DNA of 64,000 bases from NCBI GenBank assembly GCA_004431415.1, contig QPMI01000182.1, positions 1-64,000 of the forward strand, in the 5' to 3' direction. Shown here one piece after another: positions 24,801 through 53,700 of the stretch; position 1 is the first letter of the stretch; every line of letters begins with the position of its first letter. Source of the DNA: Cyanophora paradoxa CCMP329. Lineage: Eukaryota > Plantae > Glaucophyta. A program made the position numbers and the translations under genes. The notes under the pieces are model-generated. The model worked only from the letters and a program-made list of their open reading frames with translations. It searched no databases and was not told the DNA's origin.

Positions 24801-27775
24801 GCGGTCTGGTCATCGCGCTCTTCGAATTCGGTGCTGAAATCATTGACGTCGATACTAGTACTGATATCATTTCCGAATCCTTTGGGTGCGTTCAAACGAG
24901 TCTGCAATCGACCGATCAGCCGCCAGTTAAGAGATGCATATGCATATGCCTGATCCATGAGCATATACATGCAGGTTGGGAATTGAGCATAGCGACGACA
25001 ACGGGACGAACCAAAGCCCAGTCGCATGCCTTAATCGAGGCGTTTGTCCAGGAGACGACTCCAGTTCGACCAGACACGATCGCAGCACTCGAAGAGCCGA
25101 CGACCAAAGCATGAAGCTTCAAGGAATGCAGAGGGAGCGACACGGACTTCGGGGCAAATAGTACCGCTGATGGCGGGTAGTATGCCGGGCCTGCGCGTGT
25201 GCGTGCGCGGGAGAGTATACGTATGCGGTGTGAGTGAGTTCTAGACGGACTCTGGATCTCGAACGTTAAAGGACATCCGAGCGCGCACTCAGTTTCAGCG
25301 TGATGTTCACGCTTGTGAGTGGCAGCAGGTCGTTTGATGGGCACATACAGAACTTGAAGATAGGCATAGAAATTTGCAGCTCGCGGTCATATCCAGCTGC
25401 AGCGAGCGATAGCTGATCGATCTCCCCCACGAGGCGCGCCGTTAGGGTGAAACGAAATGTCGATCCCGCTCGACCGTCAGCGGCACGCAGAACTTCCAGT
25501 ACTGAAATATCGAAGGCGACGCTGAGGTTCGCACCGCCGCGAAGCCCTACGACCTTCGGTGCCCCAAGCATCCGGAGGAGCGCGTTGGCTTCCGCATCCC
25601 GTATCTGGTCATGATTAATATTGTAAGAACGAGCGCGACTAAACTTCCTATAAAACATCGTTATTCCCGGAGCGCGGAGTCAGTTACCTTTGTGGAGAAT
25701 GTGATCGCGCACGCTGTCGGAATTCCGATGTACGCAGTATTCGGCACACACTCCACCGAAGTTCTGACGGGAGAGTGTCTAATTAGACACCGATGCTATG
25801 CTTCTGTTGCACGCGACGATATCTTTAATTTCTAATGACCGGAGAGATGCGAATTCGAATTCTATATATAGCTTAGCTCATCAATTAATATTTGATTCGC
25901 CGATTGCAAGCACATGCACCTTGGATCGACCTGGACTTGAGGGAGAACAGATACGTTGCGCGAAATGAGTATTGTTGAATTCGATTTGGCCAGGGAGCCG
26001 GAGGAGCTGGTCGCGTCTGAGGGCCCGACAGGAGCCCTTGGCGAGACAGCGATGTTGATCACGCCAGCCGCAGGCTCCTCCAGGCTATGATTGAAAAGCA
26101 CGGCGAACACGAGCTCTTGTGATGTGGAGCAGTTTGCAATCGACCGCAAGCATAGGGATGTTCGGAACGTAGCAACCGCGTCTCCAGAACCGAAAAGAGT
26201 GATGTCTGACAGCGAAGCGGGGTACGGCGCGCCTGAATCAGTGCGCGGGACGAATGTGCAGTTCAGCTCCTCCCCTACAAAAGCAAGTATACTACTATAA
26301 CTAGATGTATTCGATTTGGAGCTGCACTCGATCGAAGACCGCTGCGCGGAAAGTTGTGGTTCGGGAATAGACTCTGCGCGAAAGTGAACATTAAAAAAAC
26401 TTAAAAACAACGCAAAAGCATTCAGACTGCATCTAGACTCAAATATATATCCAGATCTAGAAGAACGGGAAGACGTCGACGTGCGCGTGTGTGTGGTGTG
26501 GGGAGAGGGGGGGGTGGGGGAGGGGGGGGGGGGGGGGGGCGCACGATCGCGAGGCGCTAACGCCACAGGCGTGACATCCCATATCGAGACGTTTCCGGCC
26601 TCGTCTCCAGTGGCAACGAATGCGGCACGCGCACTCTGAGACAGGGCAATAGACCAAATGCTGATCGATTGCGGAGTCGAGGACTGAACGGAGCGAATTT
26701 CGATTGGACGGAATCCTGGTAGCTGAGCGCCATCCTCGACATTCCACGCACGCACGCGACCGTCCTCGCCTAATGATTGCGAATTTGCGATTGCAGTGTT
26801 AGATGAATTTTGCATCGCATTTAGATCTTGATTCATCGATATCGCACCGGCAGTGATGCACATAGACCCGTTGGATGCGGCGGCAACCGAAAGGACTGCA
26901 CCTACGCCTGCGTCCGCAACTCCGGCCCACTGTTGGGCCCCTGTCGACGTCGACCACATGCGGATTCGTTGAGGATCGTTCTTGTTTGCGACGCTGACGA
27001 GCAACGCGGAGTGGGGGATGAACGCGATGCCGTACACCCAGTCCGTGTGGCCCCTGAGCACGCGAAGAACGGACCCTGTGGAGGCGGACCACAAGATGAC
27101 AGACGCATCGAACGACGCTGTCGCGAGAACATCGTTGGAGAAGAAAGCGACCGCCGCGATCCCATTTGTGTGGTTGTTCAGCGACCGCAGCTGCGTGCCA
27201 TTGCTCATGGACCATACATATGCCAGCGCAACACTGGTGCCGGTCACGGCGAGTGCTCCGTCTGGCGAAACGCCGGCAGCCAGCACAGTGACAAAGTCGT
27301 CGTGCTTCAGGGTTCGCTGCACGGTTCCGTCGCTGACTCGCCAGATCCGCGCGACCGAGCCCGGGCCCGCTGCAAGCACGGAGGCGCCGTCGGGAGTGAA
27401 GCAGACCGTCCTGACGCTGCCCGTGCCGTTGCTGAGAGACCGGAACATGGCGCCCCCGGCTGCGGACACGTTCCAGAGCTTCACGGTTCCGTCTCGGCCG
27501 CCCGAAGCCAGCAGGCGGCCTGTGCTGTCGAGAGCGAGGCCCAAGACCGCACCGACGTGCCCGGACAAGCGCACGGGGGGAGGGTAGTCACCGGCGCGGG
27601 CCTGCGGCTGCGCCCACACCGGCCGCGGAAACGACGCCAGGCCTAGGACTGCAACAGCAGGTTACGAAGTTAGGCCATGCACACGGCCGAGATATTCGAC
27701 AGCGGACGCGGAGCAGTCGCAAGTGCTTGCCTGTAAACATGAGGGCAAGAAGCTTAAGCTTAAGCACCTGTACCG
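18853..27775 (-). CDS. Large membrane protein: signal peptide, WD40 beta-propeller, Ig/filamin/PKD-like modules, multi-TM (TRP-like/FLC-type) region, disordered tail; multi-exon
   Basis: About 7 WD40 repeats in ORF 25862-27619 (GHVGAVLGLAL...DGTVKLWNV; NHTNGIAAVAF...SFDASVILWS; GHTDWVYGIAF; DEAGNVSIWDV). Ig-like strands WQLTLTVSDSAG and GTYTLELTVIDAF. TM helices AVGAAVTAAAAVAVGV, VIFWTSIAFFGIWVL, FPFLELCFIMMCAPGL, VIIPGFFLIGCSFMLV, plus an RYSALFDAF motif. Hydrophobic N-terminus LLALMFT|VLGLASFPRPVWA arises via a GC-AG intron. The exact start and single-gene status are uncertain. Confidence 0.65.
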
Positions 27776-31270: not shown

Positions 31271-31845
31271 TCATGCACTTGACGAGCAGTGATTTTGACC
31301 TGTAAGCGCACGACGCCGTGAATCCCGTGACGCCGGCCGCGGTGCGCACGTGCACGGGCGCCGGCGCCGCCGGCTAGCGCTAGCGCTGGCGCCGGCGCCG
31401 GCGCCGGGCCGAGTGTTCGCGTTAACGTTAACGTTCAACGTTTTCAAAAGCCGGCCGCGGGTACGCCCAGCGCTTGAACTGCGGCTGTACCCCCCACGTT
31501 GCGACGCAGCCGACGCGCTAGCTATTATAGCCAGCAGCTGCAGGCCGCAGGCCGCACACCGGCTCCGAGCGCTAGCGCTCGCCCTACCGTAGTAGTACAC
31601 GCACTTGACGAGCAGTGATTTTGACACCTGTGCATGCGCATCAGTGGCTCGCTCCGCATCGCGTCAATTTCGCCGCCGGCTAGCGCTAGCGCTGGCGCCG
31701 GGCAGAGTGTACGCGTTAACGTTAACGTTCAACGTTTTCAAACCGGCCGCGGGTACGCCCAGCGCTTGAACTGCGGCTGTACCCCCACGTTGCGACGCTC
31801 GCAGCTGCAGCAGCCGGCAGGCCGCACGTCGGCACTCCGAGCGCC
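31241..31845. repeat. Imperfect tandem duplication, ~326-bp period, upstream of the surface-protein gene
   Basis: GCACTTGACGAGCAGTGATTTTGAC occurs at 31275 and 31601. The block CGCGTTAACGTTAACGTTCAACGTTTTCAAA...CCGGCCGCGGGTACGCCCAGCGCTTGAACTGCGGCTGTACCCCC is present twice. Confidence 0.85.
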
Positions 31846-32333: not shown

Positions 32334-35300
32334 ATGGCTCCGACTCCAGTCGACGTCGTCCGCCGCCGCGCCCGGCCTGGCTCGGCGACGTCTCGCGGCT
32401 TCCTCGTGTCATTCGCAGGTGCGCGCATCCGCCGGCGCGGTCGGGCGCCGGCGCCCGACCGCCGCGCAGCGCTGGCGGCGCTCGCGCTGGCGGCGGCGCT
32501 GCTGCCGGCGGCGGCGGCGGCGGACGCGGAGTGGGGCTGGGGCTCGGGCAGCTGGAGTGGCTCCGGAGACACCCCCGTGCGGGTACGCCAGCTCTCCACC
32601 CGCCCCGCACCCCCCCCCCCCCCCCCCTCCGGCCCGGCGCCGCGCCGCTCGAGCTCACGCTCGCCGCTCGCGGCTAACAGGGCGCGCGCGTGGTGGCGAT
32701 GCCGGCCCGCGAGGCCCTCGACGCCTGCCTCGCCACCGGCCGCATCAGGCCCGCCCCGCCCCGCCTCGCGTCCCGCCGCCCGCTGGCTACATCCCGGGCC
32801 GATTCCCGGCTCACGCCCGGGGCAGGATCGACTGCCCGGCAGCGGTCAACCTCGCCCTGCGCAACCCCACCCTCGTCGTGCGCCCTCCCCCTCGCCTCGC
32901 GGCGCTCCCCGTCAGCCTTCGCCTCTAGTTCTGATCCCGCGGCCGCCGCGCCCTCCCCCGCAGATCCCGGCCTCGCCCACGTACCCCCCGGTGCGCCGCG
33001 CGTATACCGCCCCACCCCTCTATCCGGCCTTGATCGCAGGGTACACTTTCAGGGTTCGACGCCGGCCGCGAGCTTCTTCAAGGCGAGCTCTGCGACCCGC
33101 CTATCCCCCCCCCCCGCCCGCCCTCATTGCCGTACCCCAGGCCAAGTACAACGTCTCGTCGGGCCTCTCGAAGGACCCCGAGGCCGACGCCTTCACCATG
33201 GCCGTCATGGTCTCCGACGTGCGTACCCCCTCCTGACCTATCCCCCCCCGCATTTCCCCCCTCCCCCTTCCTTCTGCCCGCTCCCCCTTCCTTCTGCCCG
33301 CTTCCCCTTCCCCGCGCCCTACCCCCTCCCCAGTGGTAGCCCCCTCGCGCCCTTCGCCCTCCACGCCTCTTCCCCCCCCCCCCCCCCCCCGCCCTTCTTC
33401 CCATCCCCCATCTCTGCCCTTCGCCGACCCTCCACCCCCCGCAGGGCCCGGACGGGACGGCGGTGATGCAGATCGGGGGTACCGGAAAGGAGGTGGACCC
33501 GGCGACGGGGGCGATGAAGGGCGCGCAGCGGATCACGCTCCAGGGCTCCAACTTCGAAAGGATCGTCGCCGGCGGCCCGATCCGCGGCGCCGGCGGGGGC
33601 GTGCCCCTCACGGTCATCGGCGCCTCGTTCGAGCCGCGGGTGAGCCCCGCGGCCGGCCCCGACGACGACTGCGACGGCGTGGCTGCCCTCGCGGCCGACG
33701 GGCGGGACAACGACTGCGACGGGCTCGCCGCCTCCACCGACGGGCGGGACAACGACTGCGACGGGCTGCTGGCCGCGGCCGCCGCCGGCGGGGGCGACAA
33801 CGACTGCGACGGCCTCGACCCGAGCCGCGCCGCCGCCTGCCGGGCGACCGCCTGCCGCGCCCGGGCCTGCCGCGCCGCCGCCTGCCGGGCCGCCGCCGCC
33901 TCGCCCGCGCCGCCGAAACCCACGGGCACCATCATCATCACCGTCGTCGGGACCCAGTTCGGCATCCACCCCGCCGTCGACCACAACGGGCGCTCGGCGC
34001 GCGGAGGCTTCGCGCTGACGCTCACGGGCACCGCCTTCGGGGCCGTGTCGGAGGGGAGCCTGCCCAAGGCCGGCACGGTGCTCAACGTCACCGGCGCGGC
34101 CTTCGTCGCCCCGCGGGCGCGCCCGGGCCGCGACAACGACTGCGACGGCAAGGACGACGACTGCGATGGCCTCGCCGCCGCCGCCTCTGCCGGCCCCGAC
34201 GACGACTGCGACGGCGTGGCGGCCTCGCTTGACGGGCGGGACAACGACTGCGACGGGGTGGCGGCGGCGGGCGAGTACTCGCGCAGCGGGATGCCCCTCG
34301 TGTGGAGCCCGCGGAGCAACCTCTTGCGGGAGGTGGTCACGCCCGTCCGGCCGGCGCAGGGCCCCATGGCGGGCGGCACGCTCTTCGCCCTCACCATCCA
34401 CGGCGACCCCTTTGCCTTCCCGTCCGCTCTGCTCTCCTCCTAAACCTTCGCCGAGTTGCGATTGTGACTCTGACCCGCGGCAGGGTCGGGGACCGGGGGG
34501 CGGCGGAGGCGGGGCAGCGGGCGGCCTTCGCGGCGGGCGGCCTGCCCCTCAACGTCTCCGGCTGCGTCTACGTCGAGGGCCCCGCGCCCCTCCTAGTGAC
34601 CGCCGTGGACGGCACCGCCGTCGCCCTGTACCCCCTCCCCGACGAGGTCCCCCACGCCGAGGCCTTCCTGGCCTCCGCCGACCTCTTCGGGGGCACGCCG
34701 GGCCGGATCGCCTCGGGCACGCTCTGCGGGGGCGACCGCGGGCTGGCGCCCACGGACGCCGGGGCGGCGATCAGCGGGGCGTCCGTGGCGGGGCGGGCGC
34801 CGAACGCGCTGGGGCCGGCGGGGGCGGCGACGGCGTGGCCGCCCGTCCTCTACGACGCGGCCGTCTTCTTCCGCGACGGCCGCGCCAGCCTCGCCACCCG
34901 GTGCGCCCGCCCCGCCCCGCCTCCCCCCGATCACGAGGCCCCGCGGCGCCGGCTCTCAGCAGCACCCCGGCTGACTCGTACGCGGCGCGGCCAGGGTCTC
35001 CCGCGGCAAGGGCATGGGCGGCGGCGCCAGCGGGTGCGCGCGGAGCCCGCTTCGACCGCCTCCTCCCCCTCGCCCCGCGTTGAGCCCTCGGCGGGGGCAG
35101 GGACCAGAGCGGGAGCTCGATCCTGCGGGCCGGCAGCAGCGCCAAGATCGTCACCGACCGCGACACGTGCGCCCCGCCCCGCCCCGCCCCGCCCCTCTAC
35201 CGCCCCGCCCGCCCCTCCCCGCCCCTCCCCGCCCCACCTTGAGCGAGGCTCCGCAGGGGTCGGAGCAAGGGCTTCGGGCGGCACCTGCTCGAGACCGCCC

Positions 35301-38300
35301 CGGCCGCGGGGGCCTGCCGCGACAACAACATCGGGTGCGCCCATCCCCCGCCTCGCCCGGCCCCACCCCGCCCCGCGGCTTCTCACTCGGGGCGGGGCGG
35401 CGGCAGAGGGGCCTTCTTCTGCGCCGAGCGCCTCGACGCCGAGTCCCTCGACGCCGCCCGCGCCGTCCGCCCCGCCCCTCTCCTCTCCTCTGCTTTCTTT
35501 CTTTCTTTCCGCTTTCTGAGGAGCGTGCGTGCAGGTGGAGGCGGCGAGCGGGGGCCTCTCGACGCTCCTCGTGCCCCCCGAGCGCCTCGACGTCTCCGTC
35601 CTCGCGCCCCGCAAGGGCGCTCCCGCACCCGCCGACGTGCGCGCGCCCGCGCCTCCACAGCTCCCTTTCTCGTAGGGGCCGACTTGTCGGACCGGGTCCG
35701 TGCAGGGCGGGGCGCGGGAGGTGACGGACGCGAACTTCGAGGAGCTCGTGATGGCCCGCGACTCGCCCCGCGTCGCCAACGACACCGAGGCCCGCCCGCC
35801 CCGCCCGCCCCTTCTTCTTTCCTTTCGCATTAAATTTTGATCCGGCTGCGCCCGGCGAGCAGGGCGTGGTGCAGACGTCGACCTTCGCCTTCACGCCGGC
35901 CGACGGCGCCTTCGGCTACGCCCGCGCCGCCTACTACGAGGAGGTCCAGCCCCCCCAACCCCTCTCCCCTCCCCCCCTCCCCCCTTCCCCCTTCCCCCCC
36001 TCCCCCCCTCCCCCCCCTCCCCCCTCCCCCCTCCCCTCCCCGCCCCCCCCCCTCACCCCACCCCGCGATACCCTCTAACCCCTCCCGCCCCCCCCCCTCC
36101 CCCCCGCCCCGCCCCCTTCTCCTTTCCCTTCTCCGCTCCCTCTCGTCCCCCGTCCCCATTCGTTTTTCCCTTTCTCCTCTTCCCCCCCCTTCCCCTTTTC
36201 CCCTTCTCTACCCCTCCTTCCTCCCCCCCCCCCCCCCCCCTAAAGTCGCGACTGACGATCGCCCGGAAGGACGACGAGGACATCTTGCTGGAGGCGGTCT
36301 ACTACAACAACTCCCGCCCCGCCACCTGCTCCACCACCCTCGTCCGCCCCGCCCCGCCCCGCCCCGCCCCGCCCCGCCCCGCCCCGCCCCGCCCCGCCCG
36401 TCTCACTTGGGGGCAGCTGCGGGAGGGGACGGTGCTGGAGGCGTGCGCGGCGCCCTTCGGGCCCCTCTCCCCCGGCGGCAGCTGGGACGGCGACGCCGTC
36501 ATCCGCCTCACCACCAGGGTCCGCTCCCCGACGCTTTCATTGTTTGTTCGTTCTATTCGAGGCACGACGTCTGATCTCGGATGGACGTCAGACGCTGGCG
36601 GGGGAGCCGACGGCCCGCTGCTTCCGCTACGCCGGCGGGGCCCCGCTCGGCGTCTCGGTGGTCGCCGGCTCGGGCGGCGGCGCCGCGTCCGCCGCGTACG
36701 CGGCGACGGGGCGCATCATGGCCGGCTCGAGCGGCGGCGCGTCGACCGCCGCGTACGCCGGGACGGGGCGCATGGCCAGCGCGGGCGGGACGGGGAGCAA
36801 CCCGCTCTACTCCGAGTCCGGGCGCGAGGTCCGGAGCCCGCTCTACAACGGGCAGGGCGGCCAGACGCGGGCCCGCCTCCGCCACCTCCTCCAGGCGAGC
36901 CCCCGCCGCCGCCGCCGCCGGTTGCCCCCTCCGCCTCGCCCGCTGATGCGCCGCGGTCCCGCCAGACGTACGTGAACGGGACGGACGTGCTGCTCAAGTG
37001 CCGCGCCCTCGGGGCGAGCATGGGCCTCCTCCAGCAGTACTACAAGGCGAGCGCGCCGCCGCCCCGCACTCGTCATCCCTTAACCCGACCCGATCCGATC
37101 CGATGCGCCTCCGCCATCAGCCGTGCTGCGGGGACGTGGACGGGGACGGGGTCGGGGACGGCGCCATCGACTTCGCGAAGGTCAAAGTCGCACGCGCCGT
37201 CTGCCGCGCCTCCATCGTGCGCCCCGGCCCCGCCACACCACGCCCATCCTCCGCCCATCGAATTAAACGAACGGGGGGCAGGACGCGGCGACGGGGGCCT
37301 CCTACGAGACCTGCTCGGGCCTCGCCGTGCGCCCCCCCCCCCCCCGCCCCGCCCCGCCCCGCCCCGCCCCGGCCGCTCGGACTCGATCCCGTCTCATCTG
37401 AGGCCGGGGCCGGCGCCGGCGCGCGGGCCCTCAGACGGCGGAGGGCGGCCTGGTCTCCCGCCTCACCGTCACGGTGCCGGGCCCCGCCCCGCGCCGGGGC
37501 TCGAGCTCCACGGCAGCCGACCCTGCCTGACCCAGCTGACCTTGCAGGACGAGCACGGGGGGGCGACGGAGCGGTACATGAACGTGACGGTCCCCAAGCA
37601 GACGCAGGGCGCCACCTTTGGCGAGCGCGTCAACTCTGGCCTCGCCTCCGCCGTGCGCCCGCGCCCTTCCCACCCGACTCCAGCGGCGCCCGAGAAGGAG
37701 CTTCGAGCGTGGGGCGCATGCGCAGGGGGGCGGGGGCCGGCGGGAGTGGCCTTGGGGCCCCGCCTGGTCCTTCGGCGGGCGCCTTCTCATGGCCGGCCCC
37801 GTGCGCCCCGCCGCCCGCCCGCCGCCCGCCCTTTGCCCCCGCCCCGCGACCCTTGAGCCGGGGCGGCAGAGCGGGGCGGGGAGCTCGGGCTCGGGCGGTG
37901 GGCGGCTGGGCGGGAGGGCCCTATTCGTGGACGGCCCGCGGGGCGGGCTCCACATCCGCCGCGTCAAGTGCGAGATGTACTGCGAGCGCATCGTGCGCGC
38001 CCCGCCCGCCCTCCCACGCCCTCCCGCCCCGCCTTCTCTCTCTCTCTCTCCTTCCTGGGCTTGACGTCGGGGCAGAGGAGCGTGCGGATCGGGGACGAAG
38101 TCTGCTTCTACGAGGGGACGGGCTCCGCGTCCGCCCCGCCCGCCGCCCTCCGCGTCGTCCGCCACCCCGCCCCCCTCCGCGCCGCCCCGCGCCTTGGCAT
38201 TGACTCCTGCGCCAGAAAACGAAGCACGACACGGCGAAGAACTCGGTGGGCAACATCCGCGCCCGGGGCCGCCGCGGCGCCCTCGCCGCCGGCGCCGAAG

Positions 38301-41300
38301 TTGAAGAACTGGCCCCCGCCGACGCCCGCCCCGTCTTCGTAACCGTCTACCCGGCGCGCCGCCCCCCCTCCGCCTAAGCCTCTCGCGTCCTCTCTGACCG
38401 CGGCGCGCCCCGGCTCGGCCTGGGCAGGAGGGGGACGGGGGCGGCTGCACGCTGCCCGTGCCCCGCGCCCTCTTCGACAAGCTCGGCCTCGACGCCGTCC
38501 GCCCCGCCCGCCCCGTCCCGCCCCTTCCTCTTGACTCTGCGCTCAAAACTTCGAATTCGCCACAGGCGACTTCGGACGCGCCGGCGACGGCGGCGTGCAA
38601 GCCCTCCGCGACGGAGGCCTTCGCGTGCTCCCTCCCGTACCCCGCCGAGGGCATCTCCGTCGTGCGCCCCGCCCCGCCCCGCCTCCCCGCCTCCCCGCCC
38701 GCCCTCCCTCCCGCCCGCCCGGTCGCCCGCCCGACGCCCGGGGGCGCGCAGGAGACGGTGAAGCCGCCCTCCTTCATCTCCATCGAGCTGGTCCGTACGC
38801 GTGTCTGTCTGTCTGTCTGCGCGCGCTGCGCGCTCTCCGGGACGGCTAGTTCTAGAGGGGACACCGCCCGCCCACCCGCCTCCGCGGGCGCCTCCCAGCT
38901 CCCGGCCGTCAGCCCCGGCGGTCGGCGCCGCCTGACCGGTCCCGACCCGCAGGACATGGCCGAGGGGCGCGCCCTCATCCCGGAGCCGCCCGGCGGCGTC
39001 AACCTCACCGGCTACATCCGCCTCGTCCGCCCCCTCCTTCCCCTTCGCGCCCCTTTCCCCCTCGCGGCCGGCTGACGCCGCGGCCGCTGGCCGGACAGGA
39101 CGCCATGGAGCAAGCCTACGCGCTCCACGTGGTTCGTACCCCCCCCCCCTTCGTCCCCTCCCCCCCCTCTCCCGTCCCCGCCCTCTCCTGCGGCCCGACG
39201 CGCGGCGGGCAGCTCGGGCTGGGTGGCGTGGCGTACGTCCCGCGCGCGGCGGTCGCGACAAAGCCGCGCAAGGTCAGAACCCACGTCGTGCCGCACGTCC
39301 TCCGCACCGCCACCGGCTCCCCGGTGCGCCCCGACCCGGCCCCACCCGGCCCCGCCCGGCCCCGTCCGACCTAGATACGATGTGAGCTGGGGGGCGCCCC
39401 GCGCAGCAGCCGAGCGCGAACGCCATCCCCCACGCCTTCGAGGCCGTCCCGATGCGCGACATGGTCCGCCCCTCCCGCCGCGCCCGCGCCCGCGTTTCGC
39501 TTCCTGTTCCGACGCTCGCTCGCTCGCGTGCTCGCAGGAGGCCGGCGAGTCGGTGTACATCACCATGACCCAGCGCGACCTCTCCGGCCGGCCCATCGCC
39601 GTGCGTTCGGCCTCTCCCTTTAGGGCACTCCCCCCTGCGTGGCTTAGGCGTGACTCGCTCGGGCCGAAGGCGGCGGAGGAGCCGCTGGTGCCGTGGCACA
39701 AGGCCCAGCTCGACGTGGACGCCCGCTCCTACTCCTGCCTCTCCGGGCCCTCCGCCAAGACCATTGAGAAAGCCTGCCATGCGCGCCTCCTCTTCCTCCT
39801 CCCCAGCCTGGCCCGCGCTCGGCCCGGCCTCCCGGCTGACTTGCGGCCGCGCAGGGCCTGAAGGACACGATCAAGACGCAGGTGCGGGGCCTGAGGGGCA
39901 CGGGCAGCTTCACGAGCTGGCTGGACGCCCTCCTCAAGTTCGCGGGGCGTCCCGCCGGCGCCAAGGACGCCGCCGTCGCCGCCGCCTCCGCCGCCAACGC
40001 GCTCCTCGAGGCGCGCCTCGTGTGCGGGACGGTGACCGACGCGGCGGGCGCGACGACCGAAGAGTGCGCGGCGGGGGAGGTCTTCCTGACCGAGGGCGAG
40101 AGGCCGGCGGCGGCCTCGCCCTCGCCGGCGCCGCCCCGCCACACGCCCGACCCCTACTCCGAGGACCTCCTCCGCATGTTCAACCGGGCAGCCGCCGTGC
40201 GCTCCTATCCGACTCTCCGCTGCTCCGCTCCGCCCCGCGTCCTTTCTTAGTGTGAGTGCAGGGCACGGGCGGCGGGTCGGGGCCGTCGGTGTCGCGGGTG
40301 ACAAAACGGGACGCGGCGGGGCACGTGACGAGCCTCTGCTTCGTGGAGCGCGACGAGAAGGGCGCCGTCGCCGGCGAGCTCTGCCGCTCCCCCGCCGTGC
40401 GTCGGGGCGGGGGCCTAGGCCTCTTTAGTCGTGCTTCCTTCCTCGCTTTGATCTTCTGGGGCGGCAGGAGGCGGACGCGGCCGCGCACGCGACCTTCTAC
40501 ACCGTGCGCCGCTCCTCCCTGCAGAAGGCGTCAACATTCTCTTGTCTGAGCCACGGGGCCCGTTCGATCGCATCGCAGGGCCTGGCAACGGCGGAGGTCG
40601 GCACGTGGGCCTCCCAGTACGAGTGCCACGCCCGCCCCGTCCGCCCCCGCCCCGCCCCCCCGCCCGCCCCCCCGCAAACTCCGCCGACACGGCCCGCGCG
40701 GCCCTGGCGATCGCAGTCGGCGGGGGGCCCCTCGCCGTCCTACAGCTCCTTCCCGCGGGGCGCCAAGCCCAGGGCCCCCTACCTCAGTGCGCCCTCGCCC
40801 TCCCTCGCGCGCCGCGCCCTTCACTTTCTGGTCTGAGCTTACCTGAGCCGCGCCGCGCCGGACCAGCCGGAGCGGAGAGCGCGCTGCCGGTGCACGAGGC
40901 GTGCTACCGGCTGCCGGCCGCGGCGGTGGACGGGCAGGCCACCGTCTCCGAGCGCCTCTCCGTCATCGTCCGCCCCCCGCCCCGCCCCGCCCCGCCCCGC
41001 CCCCTCCTCCCCTTTGCTTCGCTCTGCTCAGCTTCGGGGGCGCAGTACCCGCAGGACCGCATCGTCCTCGAGCGCACCCGGTCCGCCCTGAAGCCTTCCC
41101 CTCCTCGGCGCTGGATCCGACGCGGGGGCCGCCTCTGGCAGGTCGTACCTGGCGACGCGGGGCATCGACGCGCTGAAGAACCCCGTCTTCGACTTCGACC
41201 GCGCGCCCCGCCCGCCATGCCCCGCCCCGAGCCGATCCGAGCCGATCCAGAGGGCTCTTTAGAGAGAGCGGAACGTTAGGAAGGAGGCGCTCCTTAGGAC

Positions 41301-44300
41301 GAATCCTTCTCTGACCGCCCCGCCCCGCCCCGCCCCGCCCCGCCCCGCCAAGCTTGGCTCTGCTCGGCGGCGCTTCTCCTCCTTCTTCTGAGGGGCGGGG
41401 GCGCAGCGCTGGAGGGGCCCGGGGCGAGGACGACAGCGGCGCGGGCCGTCCCCAAGTGGGACCCCGTCTACCACCGCGCCGACTCCGACCTCGTGCGCCG
41501 CTTCTTGTTATCGGCGCCTCGAGCTTTTCGTGACTGACCTTCGGGCGGCCGCGGGGCAGCACGCGGTGCGGCAGCGGTACGGGGCGTGGCCGCGGGACGT
41601 GCAGTCGGGCCTGCCGACGGGCAAGCGCGGGCTGGCGCTCCTCAACACGACGACGGGCGCCACGGAGCCGGCCTCGCAGGCCGACATCGAGGCCGCCGCT
41701 GCCGAGGCCGCCAAAGCGGCCCGCCCGCTTTCCTATACTTTTAAGCCTCCTTTCCCGCCTGATCGCGAGGGCCCCGGGGCGCGCAGGACGCCGTCAGCAG
41801 CGGGACGATCGACGCAACTCGCCCCGGCACGATCGACGCGTCTCGCACCGGTACGGAGCCGCGCGCCGGCCCCGCCGTCCCCGCCGAGCCCCGCGCCGCC
41901 GCCGCCGCAGGGACCGACGGGACGTACTCGCGCGAGGCCGGCAGCGGCCTCGCCACCGGCCGGCGCATGCCGGTCTACCAGGCCCGCCGCCCCTGCAGCT
42001 CGCCCCGCCCGCACGTACAGCCCCCAACAGCCTCTGACCGGCGCCACGCGGGCGGGCGCAGGGGACGCCGCCGGGGCCGCGGGAGGCCGGGTCGGGCCTG
42101 GCGAACGGGGCCGTGGCCTTCTCGCCCCCCGCGTCCCTCTACGAGCCCGTCCTCGCCGCCGCCTCCGAGGTCCTCGTCATCAAGGGCCGCTCCATCCCCG
42201 AGGCGCGCACACCCCCCGCCCCCTACCACCGCGTACCCCTGCCGGCCCCTCTGACCGCCCTCGCTTCAGAACTCGATCGAGCGAGCCGCCCCGACGACAA
42301 CGACCCTCGTGAGCCCCCGCTCCGCCTCCACCCAAGCGCGTCCCCTCTCACTCCCACTCGCCCCCGCACGCAGGCCGGCCTGCCGGAGTGCGCGGTGGAC
42401 CCGCAGGAGGCCTGCGCCGAGGAGGCCGTCGTGTCCGTCTCCAAGCCCGGCGAGGCCCCGACCCTCACGCCCCTCGACAAGGCACGCTTCCTTCTTTCGC
42501 TCGAGCCGGCCCGGCCCCAAGGGCTGAGGGCTGACGTTTGCGGTGGCATGCGCAGGTCTGCAAGCTGTGCAGGCGGCCGCTCGTGCGCCGCGCCAAGCTC
42601 TCCAAGGCCGACGCCGGCCGCTCCTGCCCCGCCCCGCGTCCGCCCCGCCCCGCCCCCAGCCCCTCGTCCCCTGAACCGGAACCGAGTATCGACGTTTGCT
42701 CCGCTTTATTTCGGCAGCGGCGACGGCGTTCCGCGCGGCGTGGCCCCGCATCGAGGACTGTGCGCCCTTCCGTCCCGCAATCCCCGCCCCTGCGCCCTCG
42801 AGCTCGAGCGCGCCGCAGGCCTGCCGTTCACGGTGGACCCCGCGACGGGCGTCGCCTACCTCAGCCTCCTCCCCGAGAACCGCAACCCCCTGCCCCTCGC
42901 CCTCAAGGTACGCCCCCTCCCCCCTTCCCTCCCCTCCTTCCTTCGAACGCGTGGGCGCCCGGCGGGGCGGCAGGAGGCGAAGAGCGACCAGCAGAGCGTG
43001 CGGGCGCTGGACGGGAACCCATCCATCCGCCGCGCGCTCCGCCAGTCCGCCGGCACCGGCGCCGGCGCCGGCCCCGCGGTCACCGACGCGCACCTGCGCG
43101 TCACGCTTTTCTCCCTCGGCCTCAACCACGACCTCCACGACTTCCTGGTACCCCCGCCCTTCTTTCCCCCCCCCCCTCTCTCCGCTCCGCGCCCCTAACC
43201 GAACCGCCAAAGCCCGACGTCACGCTGGAGTCGGCGAAGCTCGTGGGGGCGGTCCCCAAGGCCCAGCGTGCGCTGTTCTCCTGTACCCCCCGGACCTGGC
43301 GGCGTCCGCTGCTGAAACGTTATCTGGGCCGCCGCAGTGACGACGAAGCTGCGGGTCGTCGCGGGCGCCCCCCCGCCCGTACTCAACGCCTCCGTGATCA
43401 GGTACCCCTCCCGCGCCCCTTCGAAGTCCCTTCGAGACCCCTTCTGAGGGGCGGGTCCGGGGCGCAGCGGGGAGTACCCGCTGGGGACGGTGTTCCAGCA
43501 CCGGGCGCCGTGGGACCCGCGGGCGGCGTCGTACAACTGGACTGACGGCTGCGCGGCGGCCTGCGCCGCCTGCGCCGACGAGGCCTTCGTCACCGTCGTC
43601 CTCAACCAGTGCGCACTCCGCTTGATTTATTTTGATTCTCGAAGTGAAGGTCTTGTTCCTTCGAACTGGATTCTGATTATTTGCGCGCAGGACGCTGGTA
43701 AATGAGGCGGTGCCGGCGCGGGCGGCGAGCGCGCGGGTGCGGCGGACCGTCGACGCCGGCCCCGGGCGCGGCCTCCAGCTGCGCCTCCTCGCGGAGGACC
43801 GCTGCGGCCCGGCGCTCAAGGCGGCCCCGCGGGGACCCTCCCCAAGGACTGCCGCCCCTCCCGCCGCCTCTCCTTTGCCGCCCTCGCCGCCGCCGAGGCG
43901 CGCCGGCGGCCGCCGGCCGTCGCCGACCCGCCGCGGCGCCTGCGGGAGCCGAGCCCCGTCGACTTCCCGACGCGCCTCGACGGGAACTGGACGGCCGGCG
44001 CCAGGAGCGCCGCGCCGCTGGACGGGACCTCCCGCGAGCAAATCTCCGTGCAGATCACCGACCCGACCCTGCAGACCCGCGAGATCGCGAGCCCGGGCTC
44101 GCCCCGCCGCCGCCTCGCCTCCGCCACGGACGACGGCGCCGCGCGGCCGCCCCTGCGGTACGGGTACATCCTCTGGGCCGACATGAGCCGCCGCGGCGCC
44201 CTCGACTTCGGCGCCTGCGACGCGCCCCCGGCCCCGGCCCCGGCCCCCGTCCGCCGCGCCGCCCCGAGGCCCACGCCGGCGCCCACGCCCACGCCCGCGC

Positions 44301-45357
44301 CGGCGCCCACGCCCACGCCCGGCCCCCGCATCGTGCGCCAGCCCCCTGCTCCTCCTCCCCCTCCTCCCCCTCCTCACCCAGCGGGCTTCGCGGGGGCAGG
44401 TGGGGCGGGTGCGGATCCAGTACGCGGGGGAGGGCCTCTCGGATATCGCGATCGACGAGGCCGGCCTGCCCCGCGGCAGGGGCAGGAAGCCCGCCGCCCG
44501 CATCACCCAGGTCCTCCCGGCCCCTCCCGCCCGCCCGTACTCAAGGTGTACCCCTAGCTCAAGGCGTACCCCTATCCGCAGCTCGGGGGCGAGGTGACAA
44601 TCTTCGGGGAGGGGTTCCCGTACCCCGAGCCCATCCGGGGCTTCCTGGAGGCGGGCAACGCGAGCGTCGAGGCGAACAACACGCGCTTCGACTCCGACAC
44701 CCGCCTCGTCTTCCGTGCGCGCTTTCGCGCCCCGCCAGCCTCCACCTGCTCCTTCTCCTCTAACCCAGCGCCGCCCGGCGCGCCCCTCCTTGACTTCGTC
44801 GTTTCGCAGAGCCCGTCCTGCCCGCCAGCGCGCGCAAGCGGCTCCTCCTCGGCGCGGTGCGAGCGAGCGAGCGAGCGAGCGGGGCCCCCCGCCCCGCCCC
44901 GCCCCACCCTTCTCCGCCCCCCCCCCCCCCCCCCCCCCCCCTCCACCCTCGAATAATCCGGGGCGGGCGGGGGCAGGCGCTGGCGCCGGGCTCGGTGAGC
45001 GACCTCCGCATCGTCAGCGTCAACGGCGCCTTCGAGAGCTTCCTCATCGAGAACGCGCGCCCCGGCCCCGGACCCGGCCCCCTCCCTCCTTCCTCCTCTC
45101 CCGGCCTGACTCGAGCCTCGGGCAGGCGCTCGCGTGGGACTACCCCTCGAACGGCGCCCCCTGGTGCGCGCGCGCCCTCCCCGCCTTAAACCTTCGGACC
45201 TTCCGCGCCGACCGCGGGCTCTCTCGTGTGCAGGACCACGCTGGCCTCAGCGGGCGCCCCCGCCGCCTCCCCGGCCGCTCTCGGCGCGCACCTCGCCGCG
45301 GCCCTCCTCGCCGCCCTCCTCGCCGCCTGCGCCGCCGCCGGCCCCCGCGCCCGCTAG
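32334..45357 (+). CDS. Giant secreted, probably GPI-anchored surface protein built from short motifs of unrelated families, with a C-terminal IPT/TIG domain; roughly 50 exons
   Basis: Signal-peptide-like RRAALAALALAAALLPAAAAADA at ~32458-32528. A continuous series of exons with host-type splice sites and GC3-rich codons follows. IPT/TIG-like domain ITQVLP|LGGEVTIFGEGF...FDSDTRLVF near 44495-44715. The last exon encodes TTLASAGAPAASPAALGAHLAAALLAALLAACAAAGPRAR then TAG (45355-45357), a small-residue site plus hydrophobic tail typical of GPI signals. The start codon and a few junctions are uncertain. Confidence 0.8.
33661..34257 (+). repeat. Eight coding D[N/D]DCDG repeats (MopE-type putative metal-binding motif core) in two clusters of four
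   Basis: GAC(A/G)ACGACTGCGA(C/T)GG x8 within ORF 33463-34443, interleaved with AACR repeats and IPT/TIG-like [IL]TxxGxxF strands. Confidence 0.85.
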
Positions 45358-47736: not shown

Positions 47737-50700
47737 ATGTCCTCGGGGACCGGAGCCTCCGCGGAGTTCGTCGTCCGGGCCGCGCACGCGCGTGGCGCCG
47801 CCGACATGGACTCTATGAGCGGATCAAATGTTTTGCAATGGATCCAGAGCCTGCCGAAGCTGCCGCCGGGCAGCGATCAGCGCACGGTCCAGGATCACCT
47901 CCGCCAGTTCGAGAGCTGCGCGAGCATGAGCAAGGACCTGCTCAGCGTCTCGCCGACTGCACACATCGAAGTGCAGAAGCGAACTGGGTGGGCTCTTCTC
48001 GGCACGCTAGATCACGGGCACCCCGTGCGCCAGAACATCTCGCTGTTCCAGAGCGCCGAGCAGATCGACACGCGCGAGCTCGAGAAGCTGAAGGCGTACC
48101 GGGCCGAGCGTGCGCGCACGAGCACAGCGGACCCGCGAGACGTCGCGATCCTCGAGACGCTCGACGAAAAGATCGCGCAAGCCGAGGAGGGCTTGCAGCG
48201 GACCGCCCTCACGGTCACGTACACCGCGATCAGGCGCCGTCTCGAAGATGACGCCGAGATGCGGAACCCTGACCGGTACAAGGCGCTCCTCGACCTGCCG
48301 CACGTGGGCGAGGCGCCGGAGGCGTTCTACCGCCGAATCCTCGACTTGAGCATCATCCCGGAGTGCCGCGAGGCGCACGAGACGCCGCTCATGGCACTCA
48401 TGCGCCACTCGGGCCAAATGCTCAAGCGCCGCACTCGCAATCAGTGCCGCGACTTCGAAGACTCCGAGATTTCGGACACCGATCGCCGGCACATGATGAC
48501 GAACTTCTCCACAGCTCGGAAGATCTATGATGAGCTGTCGCAGAAGATCGCGGACCGCGAGATCACGGGACCCTCTGCGGTCATCGACCTGGTAACCAAG
48601 CGCACCAATGAACTGGGCGCCTGGGACGTCGATATCTCTAAAGTCCCCGGCTCGGCCCTCGTGCTGGGCTCGCGCGGGACGCCGCTGCAGGCGCCCACGG
48701 CTGCCTCGCGCACGCCGCAGAGCGCGCCGCCGATCACGCACACGCCAGCTGTCCCCGTCGTCCCCTCGCGCTCGAACGCGGGCGCCGGCGCGGGCACGCG
48801 CATCATGTTCGCGACGACGGTGTCGGCAGCCGAGCTTGCAGAGCTCGAGGCCCACGGGTGGGACGCAGACGACGGCGAGGATCAGAACGCCGAGGTTATC
48901 TCGTTCCTGCAGCTCATTGCTCAGGACGATCCCCTCGTCGTAGTCCGCGCGCTCTACCCGTCGGCGTCCGCACCGCCGCCCCGCCTCGACGACCCGGTCT
49001 ATCAGCAAAAGATCAAAGACTTTCTGAAGGCCCGGGGCCTCCCCGAGAAGCCCCGGCGGCCGTGCCACTGCGGCGAGTCGCACTACTCGTTTGAGTGTCG
49101 GACCAACCCGCGGCCCCTGCCCGAGTGGTCGGCGATCAGTCCGACCAAGCGCCGCGGGCCGATGGGCGCGGTAGCCGGCGATCCGAAGCGCCGGTTCTAC
49201 CCCGCCCCGGGCGCGAACGGGCGCACGAGCCCCGCTCCCCCGGGCACCGTCAACGGCAACTGCTACAACTGCGGGAAGCCCGGCCACCGCGCGTCGGTCT
49301 GCCCCGCGGTTGAGGAGCGGATCCAGGCCTCAGTTCGCCGCGCCCTCGCCGAGCAGACGGGGGGGCAGGCCAACGACCCCGCGACGATTCAGATCGCGCG
49401 CGCCCTCCTTGAGCAAGTCGTTCGCGCCGCGCCGGCAGCGTCGGGCGCCCTCCTGGGGACGCCGCCCGCACCCACGGGGTCTGGCCCCGTTGCCGCGCCA
49501 TCCCCGGCCGAGCTCCGGAATGCGAAGCACGTGTACCGCGTACGCATTGTGCGCAGCGATGAGGCGACCCTGGAGGACACCCTGCGGGTCTTCATCGCGG
49601 CCGCCGTGGCAAACGCCGCCGCGCTGAAGACCCCCCAGGAGGGACCCGCGCTCGACACGGTCGCCGCCGCTGCCACCGCCTTCGCGGTCGCGGTGGCGCA
49701 GCTGACGGCGGAGAACCGCCCCGACCTGTGCCCCCCGGGCCTCGCGCTCGAGGAGCCGGCCCCGTGCGAGGCGCAGGATCTGTCGCCGACCCGCCCGGAG
49801 TCGGGTCTGGACGCGGGGGAGAAGACGGTCGCGTTCGACGCAGTGGACGCCGCCCTTGAGGAAATCGCACTCCTCTTGGCGGCCGCCCCGGACCCAACGG
49901 AGGTCGAGGGCGCTGACGCAGAAGCGAAGGGTCCCGCGCCGACGCCCGCGCCGACTTCTTGCCCCGCCGAGCTCGCCGCCGGCATCGTGGACGCCGCCCT
50001 TGAGGAGGTCGCACTCCTCTTGGCGGCCGCCCCGGACCCAACGGAGGTCGAGGGCGCTGACGCAGAAGCGAAGGGTCCCGAGCCTGCGCCGGAGCTCGCT
50101 CCCGCCGAGTCGGCCCCCGAGGCCACCGCCGCTGAGGCTCCGGCGGACCCAGCCGCCGGCGTGGGCTGCTGCCTGGAGTACTCTTCGGGGGCCGAGACTG
50201 TAGCGAGCCTCGAGGTGACCGACGACGGCGCCTCCCTCGCCGACGAGGATGCGACCGTAGCGGCTAAGGAGACCCTGCGCCTCAACCGCGCTCGCCTCCT
50301 CAGCGCTAGCCCCGGCCTAGACCTCACTCACTTCGGAGCCGTTGAGCTAGAGCCGGTGAAGGGCCGCGAGCACGAGCTGGGGCCCGTCCCTCTCTGGAAC
50401 GTGGACGCGCACAAGCTGAAGGGCGCCGCGTCGGTCCCGCTCGACCGCGCGGCGTTCCTGTACCCAGCGCCGTGCGAGACTCACTGCGGCTGCACTGCGA
50501 GCGAGGGGCTGATCGAGGTCCGGGACGAGCAGTGGTATGCCACTGCGTTCCGCTGCCCGGCCCGCACCCGCCAGACGCTCTCCTTCTTGCTCGCGGCGTT
50601 CTCTCAGCCGCTCGCCACCGAGAGCACGTACCTCGACTCCCGGACCCTCCCCACTGCGTTTCTGCAGATGCTGGGGCATGACCCGCTGTCCCAGGACGCG

Positions 50701-53700
50701 CTGGCCCACGCCTGGCCGACGCACTACTATGAGGTCATGAGCCTCGTGCACCAGACCTCTCGCGTCGCCGCGAAGTGGTCCGGGGGCCACGCGTGGCCGC
50801 ACGCCGAGGGCCTCACGCCCGAGGGTCGCCCCGCGGTCGAGCCCGACGTTCGCAAGCTCGCAAAGCTTGGGGACGAGTGCGTCGCCACCGCCGGCTGGCT
50901 GGAGCCGTACCGCCGCCACTGGAGCATCGGCCAGCACTCGCCCGTGGCGGCCTCTCTCGAGCCGCACGAGATGACGGTATCGGGCCGCCGCCAGCTGATC
51001 GAGCTGAGCGAGCTGTTGCCGGCACGGGACCGCCTCCGCCTTGCGTGCGCCTCGACCGTTGCGGGCTATTTCCTGCACCGCGTCGACTACGGTGCCCCGG
51101 GCACCGCCGGCGCCGTCGAGAAGATTCTCGGCCGCTTCTTTAAGTTCGCCGAGCCGCTCATGGTGGACGCGCGGGTCGACGCCTATGGCTTCGCCCTGCT
51201 GGCCCTCGAGCACGCGATCCAGTGGAAGACCGTGGCTTGCATCGGCGGTCGCGCCGGTCCCCACGACGCCCACAAGAGCGCCGTCGCTCCGGCCGACGGG
51301 AACCCTCTTGTCCCCTCGGACTCGGAGTTCACGGAAGCCGTTCACTCGCTTGCCGTCCTGGCTGCCTCCGTTGAGGTTCCGATCCCGGGGCGGGCACGTC
51401 TCCGCTCGGATCGGGACGCCGAGGGATGGCTGCGGGCAGCGCTCGCGGAGCGTCTGACTGCGTACCGCGACGGCCGTGCCCCCGCCTTCCCGGTCGTGAG
51501 CGAGGGCGAGTCCTGCACGGTTGAACGCGTTCCGGTGGAGCCCCGCGTCGCCGCCGCCCGCGTTCTGCACCTCCGGGACCTGCACTTGTGCGACACCTGG
51601 CTGCACTGGCCGCGCCTGCACGGGGCAGAGCCTGGCACGTGGAGGGTCGGCCGCGTGCGCCCGATCACGCGCACCACGCAGTTGCCCCTGCACGGCACGA
51701 CGCGAGGCGGGCAGCTGCCCACGATCGTGCCTGAGGAGCTCTACGTGCTGAGCCAGCTCGGCCCGCGCCCGCCGCTCACCGCCCTGTGCGATGCAGCCTG
51801 GGCCCGCACGGTTCCCGGATCCGCCGGGGCCGCGGAGCTGCTCCGGTACATCGAGGGGCCAAGGCGGGCGACCGGGCCCACCTCGTCATTCTATTCCGTA
51901 GGCTGCTGAAGAAGCGGGCCGGTTTCAATGACGAGGCTGTCAAGGACATGATCGCGCTCGTGGAGAAGTGGCGCACGGATGCGGGCAGCCGCACCCCCAC
52001 TCCTCTCCACGACCTGCCCACCACGCCGAAGCCGGCGTCGGACACGACGGGCGCCTACACGGCGAAGGCCGTCAGCGCGACGATCAAGGAGGCTAAGGCC
52101 TGCCTGCCGCCGCGCCCGCCTGTGAAGGCGCTCTCGCCGAGGGACCCGCCAGCGCCGGCGCGGCCGGCGCCCGTTCCTGTCCCGCCGCCTGCACCGACGG
52201 CGAAGCTCGTGACCTTGCACGCCGCGGCAACATGGCCGCCGCTTGCGAGCCCGACGGCGCCGCGGCCCACCGCCGCTCCGACGCCGCCCGCCACTGAGCC
52301 CGCGCCTGTCGAGCCTCGCCTGAGCGAGCCGCTACTCGACGTCGCGCGCGCGACCGCGCCGGCTCCCCGGCAGGCCGCCCGTCGCGGCGAGCGTGGCCGC
52401 GGGGACGGGGTCGTGCGCGTCAGCACCCGTGGGCGCGGCTCGCAGGGGCCACGAACCCGCAGCGCCCGCCGTGGGCAGGCTGAGGGGAAGACGCCGAGAT
52501 GGGCGAGCGGGGCGACGGCGATGAGGCGCCCGAGGAAGCGCCGCCGCCGCCGCCGCCGTCGGCTATCGATGAGAACCTGAGCCAGCGGGCCCTGTACGAG
52601 GCTATGGGCGTGATGAGCGGCGTCCTCGCAGTGCCGGGGTGCCCGCCTCGGCTCTGTGAGGGGAAACAGATCACCGAGTGGCCCATGACGGCCCGGTCTG
52701 ATCTCGCCCACCGCTGGAGCATCCCCTTCGACGCACTGAAGGGCACGTTCGAGGACCTGCGGGTCCCGCACCTCAAGGCGTTTCTCGCCAGCGAGAGGAG
52801 CACGCCAATCCAGAACCGCCTGGATGGGCCGCCCGTGCCGCACGAGGAGCCGCCGGAGGGCCGCGTCGCGCTCAGAGCCGATCGCACCGTTCGCCTCGCG
52901 CGGCTCAACGCGGCCGCGTTCGAGCTCTTCATGATCGCGCTGGGGCTCCGTGGCCCCGTCACGCCCCACTCCCACGATCTCCCGTTCCACCTGCATGAGT
53001 GGACGGAGCAGCAGTTGGAGCACTTCCTGACTCTGCGTTGGACGATCCCTGCCACGCGCCTGCCGCGGTGGACGCACGGGGGCCGCTTCAACCCGAGCGC
53101 GGCCGTCATCCCGCCGCAGTGGGCCCAGTACCTCTTGCGTGCTCACACCATGTTCCGCGCCGAGGCGGTTGGGACCACCGTTCCCTCCGCGGAACGCGCC
53201 GGCCTGGAGTTCCCGTACGGGGTTCGCTGGCTGCGCCGCCACCTGCAGCTAGGGACGCGCGCGCAGGAGGAAGCCGCCGAGAGCGACCCGCACAGGGGCT
53301 TGGCCCTAACCGCCCAGCGCGCGGCCTTCCAGGAGAAGGTCTTGCATGCCCTCGAGCGTCACGCTGCACGGCAGTCGTTCACGTTCGACGATGCGCTTGT
53401 GGGCACCTACATCGCCGATGAGCCTGAGCCCCGCCTCGAGCCGCTCGACATTGACCATGTCGAGAGCGAAGAGGAAGAGGGCGAGGAGGAAGAGGCGCCG
53501 GCTGCCATCCCTGCGGCGGCGCACAGGCCGTTCGAGCCGCACAAGGACTGGCAGCCGCGGCCGCTGTTCTCGTTGGCGGACCCGACGTACGCCAACGATC
53601 ACAAGCTCTTGCGCGAGTACATGGACCGGAAACACGCGTTTTTCCGGCCCCTGGAATGCTATGAGCCAGGGTTCACTGAATGGGCAACGCTGCCCGCGAT

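Follow-up and report, generated by a model that had tools for sequence, protein, structure and literature searches.

A Cyanophora paradoxa protein with short peptides that recur in secreted bacterial mosaic proteins: candidate mimicry of microbial predators

Plant nucleotide-binding leucine-rich repeat (NLR) receptors carry integrated decoys, such as RRS1-WRKY and RGA5-HMA, and the ligands of NAIP are the needle and rod subunits of type III secretion systems (T3SS). The Kil/T3SS* machinery of Myxococcus xanthus includes a T3SS that is needed for prey lysis and has been described as needleless (PMC12075869, PMC3459982); this machinery assembles where the cell meets prey, not kin, in response to an unknown cue (PMC10433427, PMC12075869), one proposal being an exclusion signal (PMC10433427). 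Here we analyze a 64,000-nucleotide stretch of the genome of the freshwater glaucophyte alga Cyanophora paradoxa CCMP329 (contig QPMI01000182.1, positions 1 to 64,000, forward strand; hereafter, the window), in which the gene tig00000788_g4069 (32334..45357, + strand; 66 exons) encodes a protein of ~2,530 aa. Interspersed along this protein are about 15 kinds of short peptides, each 9–22 aa long, that reproduce parts of other proteins (hereafter, quotes) and jointly account for ~13% of the residues, the remaining 87% being scaffold. A preliminary description of the window, made from the letters alone, had read the gene as a GPI (glycosylphosphatidylinositol)-type surface protein assembled from signature peptides of unrelated families that could serve as bait or mimicry.

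A vocabulary shared with bacterial mosaic proteins

Nine residues of the quote at 38216 were converted into a degenerate DNA pattern, with which we gathered the bacterial set; the pattern matches at least 120 genomes, compared with ~0.5 expected by chance according to our estimate. The carriers belong to Bacteroidota, Patescibacteria, Acidobacteriota, Proteobacteria, Verrucomicrobia, Actinomycetota, Bacillota, Myxococcota, and archaea, and the open frames at these loci (8 kb each, denoted by L-numbers; P-numbers denote database proteins) encode mostly secreted proteins that also bear other algal peptides. Protein searches, run exon by exon or with the public EukProt model of the gene, P0001, rather than with the joined 66-exon model, added 16 long proteins (mostly YD/Rhs shells of 2,000 aa) and 86 mid-sized ones, among which the RRM, HU-like, 34297, and SiaC quotes described below have partners that are exact or nearly so. 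Altogether, the reordered vocabulary is found in ~200 secreted proteins with unrelated scaffolds from Bacteroidota, the Candidate Phyla Radiation (CPR), Verrucomicrobia, Proteobacteria, and other groups. The order of the motifs varies between the members, and all 11 scored motif classes are present in the alga, in an order unseen in any bacterial member. We define peptide mosaics as proteins in which an unrelated secreted scaffold bears multiple vocabulary peptides with no set order, and the algal protein is one of them.

The test against chance was performed with the selecting motif masked and with local shuffles and neighbor proteins as controls. At scores of at least 42, 11 algal segments matched the 109 bacterial mosaics, compared with 0.25 (maximum, 1) for shuffles and 2 for neighbor proteins; for a second set of 16 proteins, outside the searched region, the figures were 15 versus 0.3 at scores of at least 40. 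The statement in the preliminary description that several of the peptides recur together in uncharacterized secreted bacterial proteins is borne out by these searches, and matches no better than shuffled peptides, which it named as a concern, are not what these controls show for the set as a whole. The alternative that a single folded family, homologous over the full length, underlies all the peptides was rejected: Pfam, NCBIfam, PDB, and ESM Atlas contained none, and when 1.8 and 5.8 billion proteins were searched, the algal protein itself was retrieved and then only proteins with short shared pieces. In these searches, the algal scaffold is an orphan without homologs.

At least five unrelated scaffolds are used by the bacterial mosaics, namely outer-membrane-barrel-like with CarboxypepD_reg, PKD, Rhs shell, phage-tube, and helical, and a hydrophobic N-end is present in 62 of the 74 mosaics, compared with 1 of the 11 donors, that is, the proteins being quoted, and 40% of the neighbors. 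The bacterial copies extend over up to ~80 residues of one donor, and the free C-terminus of the donor is kept in 115 of the 120 loci. Additionally, bacterial mosaics quote EF-Tu, cold-shock protein, HU, VgrG, core and tube proteins of extracellular contractile injection systems (eCIS), tyrosine kinase, and integrin tail, and several of the sources quoted by the bacterial mosaics fall into known classes of pattern-receptor ligands (PMC11161748). The alga and the bacterial mosaics share one stripped form of the Asp/Cys repeat, with no upstream Cys at -4 in 70 copies from mosaics and 7 of the 8 from the alga; a 652-aa metagenomic protein (P0002) contains clusters of this stripped repeat. AlphaFold models of one bacterial mosaic and one donor are of low confidence (pLDDT 43 and 50), and fold searches were uninformative.

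Housekeeping genes surround the bacterial mosaics, which stand alone or, at times, next to further mosaics in tandem. Beyond genus-level synteny, no partner family was seen repeatedly beside them, and neither a conserved operon partner nor, at the Rhs-type locus read (L121), an immunity gene was found. Several types of these proteins deserve separate mention. The YD/Rhs shells of ~2,000 aa (P0005, P0007-P0016, P0018; L109, L111, L121) contain quotes in the loops and at the tip, in place of a toxin. A Symbiobacteriaceae protein (L050:1836-3128, - strand) has a phage-tail-tube (T4 gp19-like) domain between vocabulary peptides that include a second needle-type C-terminal variant. The CPR mosaics (L007, L013, L016, L019, L025, L036, L082, L102) quote Hcp-, VgrG-, and tail-tube-like pieces followed by a conserved helical C-terminal module, and several possess PKD domains. 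Finally, small non-myxobacterial proteins, most with a signal peptide, end in the whole needle-like C-terminal helix (L010, L028, L038, L051, L087, L089, L101, L012, L094, L118), with no type III genes in their 8-kb loci.

Donors of the quotes and origin of the algal copies

At about 10 of the 120 loci, the gene is a native one of Myxococcota, encodes ~180 aa, and contains three algal quotes in one fixed order. The respective operon consists of a 93-aa gene, the 181-aa needle-like gene, a TPR protein, a 132-aa gene, a FliA-like sigma factor, a 138-aa gene, and SctJ, followed by FliG-like, SctL, SctN, SctO, SctP, and SctQ (the 181-aa and 138-aa genes are located at L243:10001-10546 and 12323-12739, and are also found in L040, L043, L056, and L002). 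The 138-aa, rod-like gene occupies the SctI position, before SctJ, and matches T3SS_needle_F; its C-terminus is the algal quote at 39855, which was not part of the motif selection. EF-Tu, considered as the source of this quote from an alignment extension, was rejected given the exact rod-like C-terminus. Only 2 of the 13 operon genes, those for the two exported subunits, are quoted, the needle-like one by up to 196 mosaics and the rod-like one by up to 59, and both by the alga; the ATPase and other core genes are not. Four peptides left without a source family in the preliminary description come from these two subunits, and a fifth is from M. xanthus Hcp, residues 44-55 of which are the only PDB match for the quote at 41931. 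The traced donors are, then, exported subunits of myxobacterial attack machines (needle-like, rod-like, and Hcp) and abundant cytoplasmic proteins.

The 181-aa needle-like gene shows a weak match to PF09392 (E=0.058, L043), with a stronger match in the 138-aa gene before sctJ, and no match to the needle-like protein was found in PDB or with Foldseek; in the donor model, its long C-terminal helix is predicted better than the rest. The gene lies in the SctF position, between a small chaperone-sized gene and the TPR chaperone, upstream of sctI-J-K-L, and the operon order resembles yscE-F-G-H-I-J-K-L. The sctQ gene of M. xanthus is MXAN_2445 (PMC10196010), and counting back from it, the donors would be MXAN_2434 and MXAN_2438, at the start of T3SS*. 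The 181-aa gene that heads the T3SS* operon may encode an overlooked needle subunit of the 'needleless' system.

For three motifs compared across all carriers, amino-acid identity is 83–95%, with 58–63% of the identical residues encoded by different codons, and the GC content at third codon positions (GC3) of the motifs follows host GC (r=0.83–0.95). As judged from codon usage, selection holds the peptides constant while the codons drift. In the alga, introns split two quotes (35141..35278 and 42179..42281). We infer that bacterial mosaic genes, not the donors, were the source of the algal pieces and that the acquisition was old enough for introns to enter two quotes. Recent DNA capture or an assembly chimera is rejected by codon amelioration, the introns in two quotes, cultured carriers, and RNA support. 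Phage origin was also rejected, two motif patterns having no match in viral contigs; one algal exon searched in plasmids had no match either.

The algal gene, its quotes, and its surroundings

The gene model, a single open reading across 32334-45357 obtained by a parse of codons and splice signals, has 49 GT and 16 GC donors, AG at all acceptors, a median intron of 73 nt, and GC3 of 0.97, and the peptides listed previously are all encoded at the positions given for them, on the + strand, in its one continuous frame. Comparison of the region 36400-42350 (5,951 nt) with four sequencing runs yielded spliced contigs of the gene in three RNA-like runs and unspliced DNA in the fourth. The RNA contigs confirm exons 36592-42270, with five exons of the initial parse revised accordingly, so that over this range, transcripts in other frames or a split locus, raised as a concern in the preliminary description, are not what is observed. 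Ten splice joints, 40196/40262 to 42200/42268, are directly present in all three RNA-like runs, the other exon lengths from 36592 onward are fixed by RNA contig offsets, and a 4,114-nt RNA contig spans ~36770 to ~44150, judged by length. The gene is expressed and spliced. P0001 agrees with the spliced model in 2,234 of 2,263 residues; it begins at 33466, without the N-terminal 175 aa that include the signal, and skips model residues 714-801, the block with the thioredoxin-like peptide. Because both the signal-bearing exons and the thioredoxin-quote exon lie outside P0001 and the RNA-covered region, they derive from the parse. A single Gln at the acceptor 39404-39409 (tandem acceptor choice) separates the two public isoforms.

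The predicted protein starts with a long basic N-region and a hydrophobic, signal-peptide-like segment (32466..32522; hydropathy 2.15; start codon and exons 1-6 inferred). A Pro/Thr/Ala-rich stalk (44224..44332) precedes the last exon (45234..45357), which encodes a small-residue spacer and a 19-aa hydrophobic tail (hydropathy 2.09) before the stop, a putative GPI-like or tail anchor. Both hydrophobic segments expected of a GPI-anchored protein are predicted by hydropathy, with the signal exons taken from the parse.

The N-terminal part contains an isolated first strand of IPT/TIG (33532..33555; Pfam TIG, E=2.7e-4), with a second copy at 34015-34038, and eight Asp/Cys hexapeptides (33661..34257) that resemble PF11617 in the mosaic-type form, without the canonical upstream Cys; between the two Asp/Cys clusters lie five tandem Ala/Cys/Arg pentamer repeats (33817-33897). 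These are followed by an 11-aa quote identical to one in the Rhs-type mosaic P0009 (34297..34329), the intron-split RRM RNP1-loop quote (35141..35278), near-identical in mosaic P0016, and the N-terminal quote of bacterial thioredoxin (35718..35750), an exon absent from the public model. Of 120 matches to the thioredoxin-type pattern, 118 are thioredoxins, and this quote was not seen in the bacterial mosaics.

The needle-like protein contributes two partly RNA-covered copies of its Gly/Ala-rich middle piece (36673..36771), an N-terminal quote (37578..37643; 18/19 identical to L043), and its C-terminal 15 aa (38216..38260; 15/15 to L043 and L040). From the rod-like protein (SctI position), the last 10 aa are quoted at 39855..39884 (9/10 to L002, 8/10 to L243); this quote and the one at 38216 both start RNA-confirmed exons. 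Among these pieces are a double NPxY-like, integrin-beta-tail-like piece (36799..36846; E=0.24, bacterial copy E=0.059) and an FG-GAP/EF-hand-like Asp-Gly loop (37130..37150), each common to 20 mosaics, and a quote common to Bacteroidota and Rhs mosaics (39276..39305).

Farther downstream, the quote at 41590..41628, common to seven mosaics, is of a type we take to be an Hcp loop; mosaics match T6SS_HCP in Pfam. The copy of M. xanthus Hcp residues 44-55 (41931..41966; 12/12, PDB 5URW) is followed by a shorter second copy (42080..42109), the SiaC-family quote (42179..42281; 11/11 with the CPR mosaic L013; SiaC-like, E=0.003), which is split by an RNA-confirmed intron, a presumably HU-derived quote (42592..42621; 9/9 with mosaic P0013), and a short quote common to eight mosaics (44445..44471), with a borderline 7/7 match in proteins that we take to be EF-Ts. 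The excess of quotes that start exons is marginal (4 versus 1.3 expected), and the vocabulary peptides occur nowhere else in the window.

Compared with the labels proposed previously, RRM, thioredoxin, Hcp, MopE-like, and IPT strand hold, HU and amidohydrolase are tentative, both peptides being shared with bacterial mosaics, and tubulin, OmpA, FIVAR, cadherin, DUF326, and VgrG are not supported: the peptides at 39234, 41146, 41671, 42827, 43550, and 44400 have no Pfam match, score no better than shuffles, and, against 220 mosaics, retrieve nothing except a loose VgrG-type match. Conversely, the quotes at 39276-39305, 42080-42109, and 42179-42281, and five residues before 37593, had been overlooked.

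Among the surroundings, a divergent gene in a lower-GC stretch (20000-27650, - strand) encodes a surface protein, not an NLR, in which Ig-like segments and transmembrane-like helices come after a WD40 propeller. Two long intronless frames (47737-55894, + strand, and 58790-60343), the first with a gag-like CCHC zinc knuckle, accompany a tandem duplication of ~837 nt, and a duplicated block (31271-31800; spacing 294 nt, short palindromes) lies ~550-1050 nt upstream of the gene.

Proposed mimicry, its alternatives, and known systems

On the sequence evidence, there is about an even chance that the algal protein is a membrane-tethered mimicry (decoy) array directed against microbial predators. The protein would display the quotes outside the cell, where a putative peptide-reading partner of the attacker would bind them, the candidates being a sensor of self/kin or damage gating the myxobacterial type III/Tad killing machinery or, alternatively, a pattern receptor of a grazing protist. 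The attacker would treat the cell as kin, armed, or dangerous, and then would not engage or would let go; to the predator, prey that bears peptides which the predator itself exports or releases on lysis could look like kin or danger. Targeting rather than mere conservation is suggested because exported filament subunits were chosen over more conserved core genes. The exact copy of M. xanthus Hcp, the peptide identity kept across phyla, the variety of scaffolds, and the lack of a recurrent partner also favor mimicry. The broader proposal of a cross-kingdom, recombining library of peptide 'passwords', predator-exported and lysis-leaked, displayed on prey from CPR bacteria to the alga and switching off or diverting predation, is more tentative.

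Several points weigh against mimicry. The claim is read from sequence with a putative receiver, and the surface location and GPI anchor derive from hydropathy. The algal copies lack the free C-terminus that the bacterial copies keep; the set was collected via the needle motif, so that myxobacterial donors are overrepresented in it and the bias is partly built in; the housekeeping quotes are not specific to predators; and the T3SS* assignment comes from gene counting in Archangium-like contigs, not in the M. xanthus genome.

It is unlikely that the quotes are, instead, subunit interfaces that poison assembly by capping or jamming filaments at the contact site (needle, rod, Hcp/eCIS tubes, pili). 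The copying of filament-type subunits only from the operon, the retained free C-terminus in the bacterial copies, and the many non-myxobacterial genomes that combine a signal peptide with the whole needle-like C-terminal helix, the better-modeled part of the donor, all fit this possibility, but the thioredoxin, RRM, SiaC, EF-Tu, cold-shock, kinase, and integrin quotes are left unexplained, the algal copies are internal and just 10-22 aa long, and tubes of type VI secretion systems (T6SS) and eCIS assemble inside the attacker. Slightly less credence can be given to an inert remnant, that is, horizontally acquired mosaic DNA serving as an adhesin linker, or a structural (calcium-binding or self-assembling) vocabulary without an ecological partner. 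The large orphan scaffold and Asp-rich loops that could bind calcium are compatible with such a remnant; 15/15, 12/12, 11/11, and 18/19 identities persisting in a GC-ameliorated, intron-split gene, with flanking scaffold that matches nothing, and the repeated insertion into unrelated scaffolds speak against it.

Of the two functions suggested originally, mimicry is favored, whereas bait of the alpha-2-macroglobulin (A2M) type is weak because no trap, inhibitor, or signaling domain is attached to the algal protein in domain scans and the bacterial copies reach ~80 donor residues with a free C-terminus. More generally, we consider it improbable that the quotes are bait for secreted proteases or modifying enzymes, whose cutting would release or activate the protein or exhaust the enzyme: the peptides are exposed, linear, and many are Lys/Arg-rich, on a secreted scaffold, and eight bacterial mosaics have weak bMG3 matches, which reflect a shared beta-sandwich clan, but neither the algal protein nor the top families of the bacterial set include macroglobulin, thioester, inhibitor, or signaling domains, and protease sites do not require identity over 15-80 residues with the attacker's structural proteins. 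Slightly less probable still is a role as ligand for own or kin pattern receptors (alarm or tonic priming, as with microbe-resembling plant phytocytokines), which the overlap with receptor ligand classes and the tethered, sheddable precursor would fit, but which would require the same receptors in CPR bacteria, archaea, and the alga, with no receptor gene adjoining any mosaic or the algal gene (neighbor, the WD40/Ig-like membrane protein).

The vocabulary amounts to a list of peptides that selection has kept fixed in different phyla and kingdoms, apart from the proteins they came from. Should it act on predators, it would supply ligands for the withholding of Kil/T3SS* attack from myxobacterial kin, would open the kin/prey question to tests with synthetic peptides and the M. 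xanthus reporters already at hand, and would imply that prey defense by molecular mimicry is common to freshwater bacteria and a eukaryote.

In the literature searched, including six motif strings, we found no description of such a peptide-mosaic surface protein, and the algal protein falls outside the A2M, TIG-repeat, PF11617-repeat, integrated-decoy, and Rhs-toxin families. The only Pfam matches are the partial TIG strand, at profile positions 5-26 of 84 and once, the C-terminal TIG-like stretch having none, and a sub-threshold PF11617 (MopE-like) match of 17.5 bits against a cut-off of 27. The bait region of A2M, animal and bacterial, similarly belongs to a large secreted protein and exposes linear peptides to which foreign proteins are the intended partners, but Pfam and NCBIfam scans detect no A2M family in P0001, and the algal protein, without macroglobulin or thioester domains, has dispersed quotes, copied from the attacker and shared across kingdoms. 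Like NLR integrated decoys, it fuses borrowed pieces of unrelated proteins into what would be a defense protein; those decoys, however, are whole host domains, intracellular and NLR-wired, whereas here the pieces are foreign extracellular peptides of 9-22 aa without a signaling module (no STAND, TIR, or kinase module in P0001, and no cytoplasmic tail). Some bacterial mosaics are full YD shells with quotes at the tip position, as in Rhs/YD polymorphic toxins, but have no visible C-terminal tip toxin or downstream immunity gene (one locus, L121) and carry quotes in shell loops too. Myxococcus T3SS* (MXAN_2434-2464) and T6SS Hcp, the donors of five kinds of algal quotes, are models rather than relatives, given that the window encodes no other machine part. 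The donor classes, cold-shock protein, EF-Tu, and needle and rod C-termini, are shared with microbe-associated molecular pattern epitopes (csp22, elf18; PMC11161748) and NAIP ligands, but those epitopes reside in native proteins, whereas here they are excised and concatenated on purpose-built carriers; the sole concatemer of such epitopes found in the literature is engineered (PMC12977627). The overall pattern points to an undescribed, cross-kingdom form of anti-predator mimicry.

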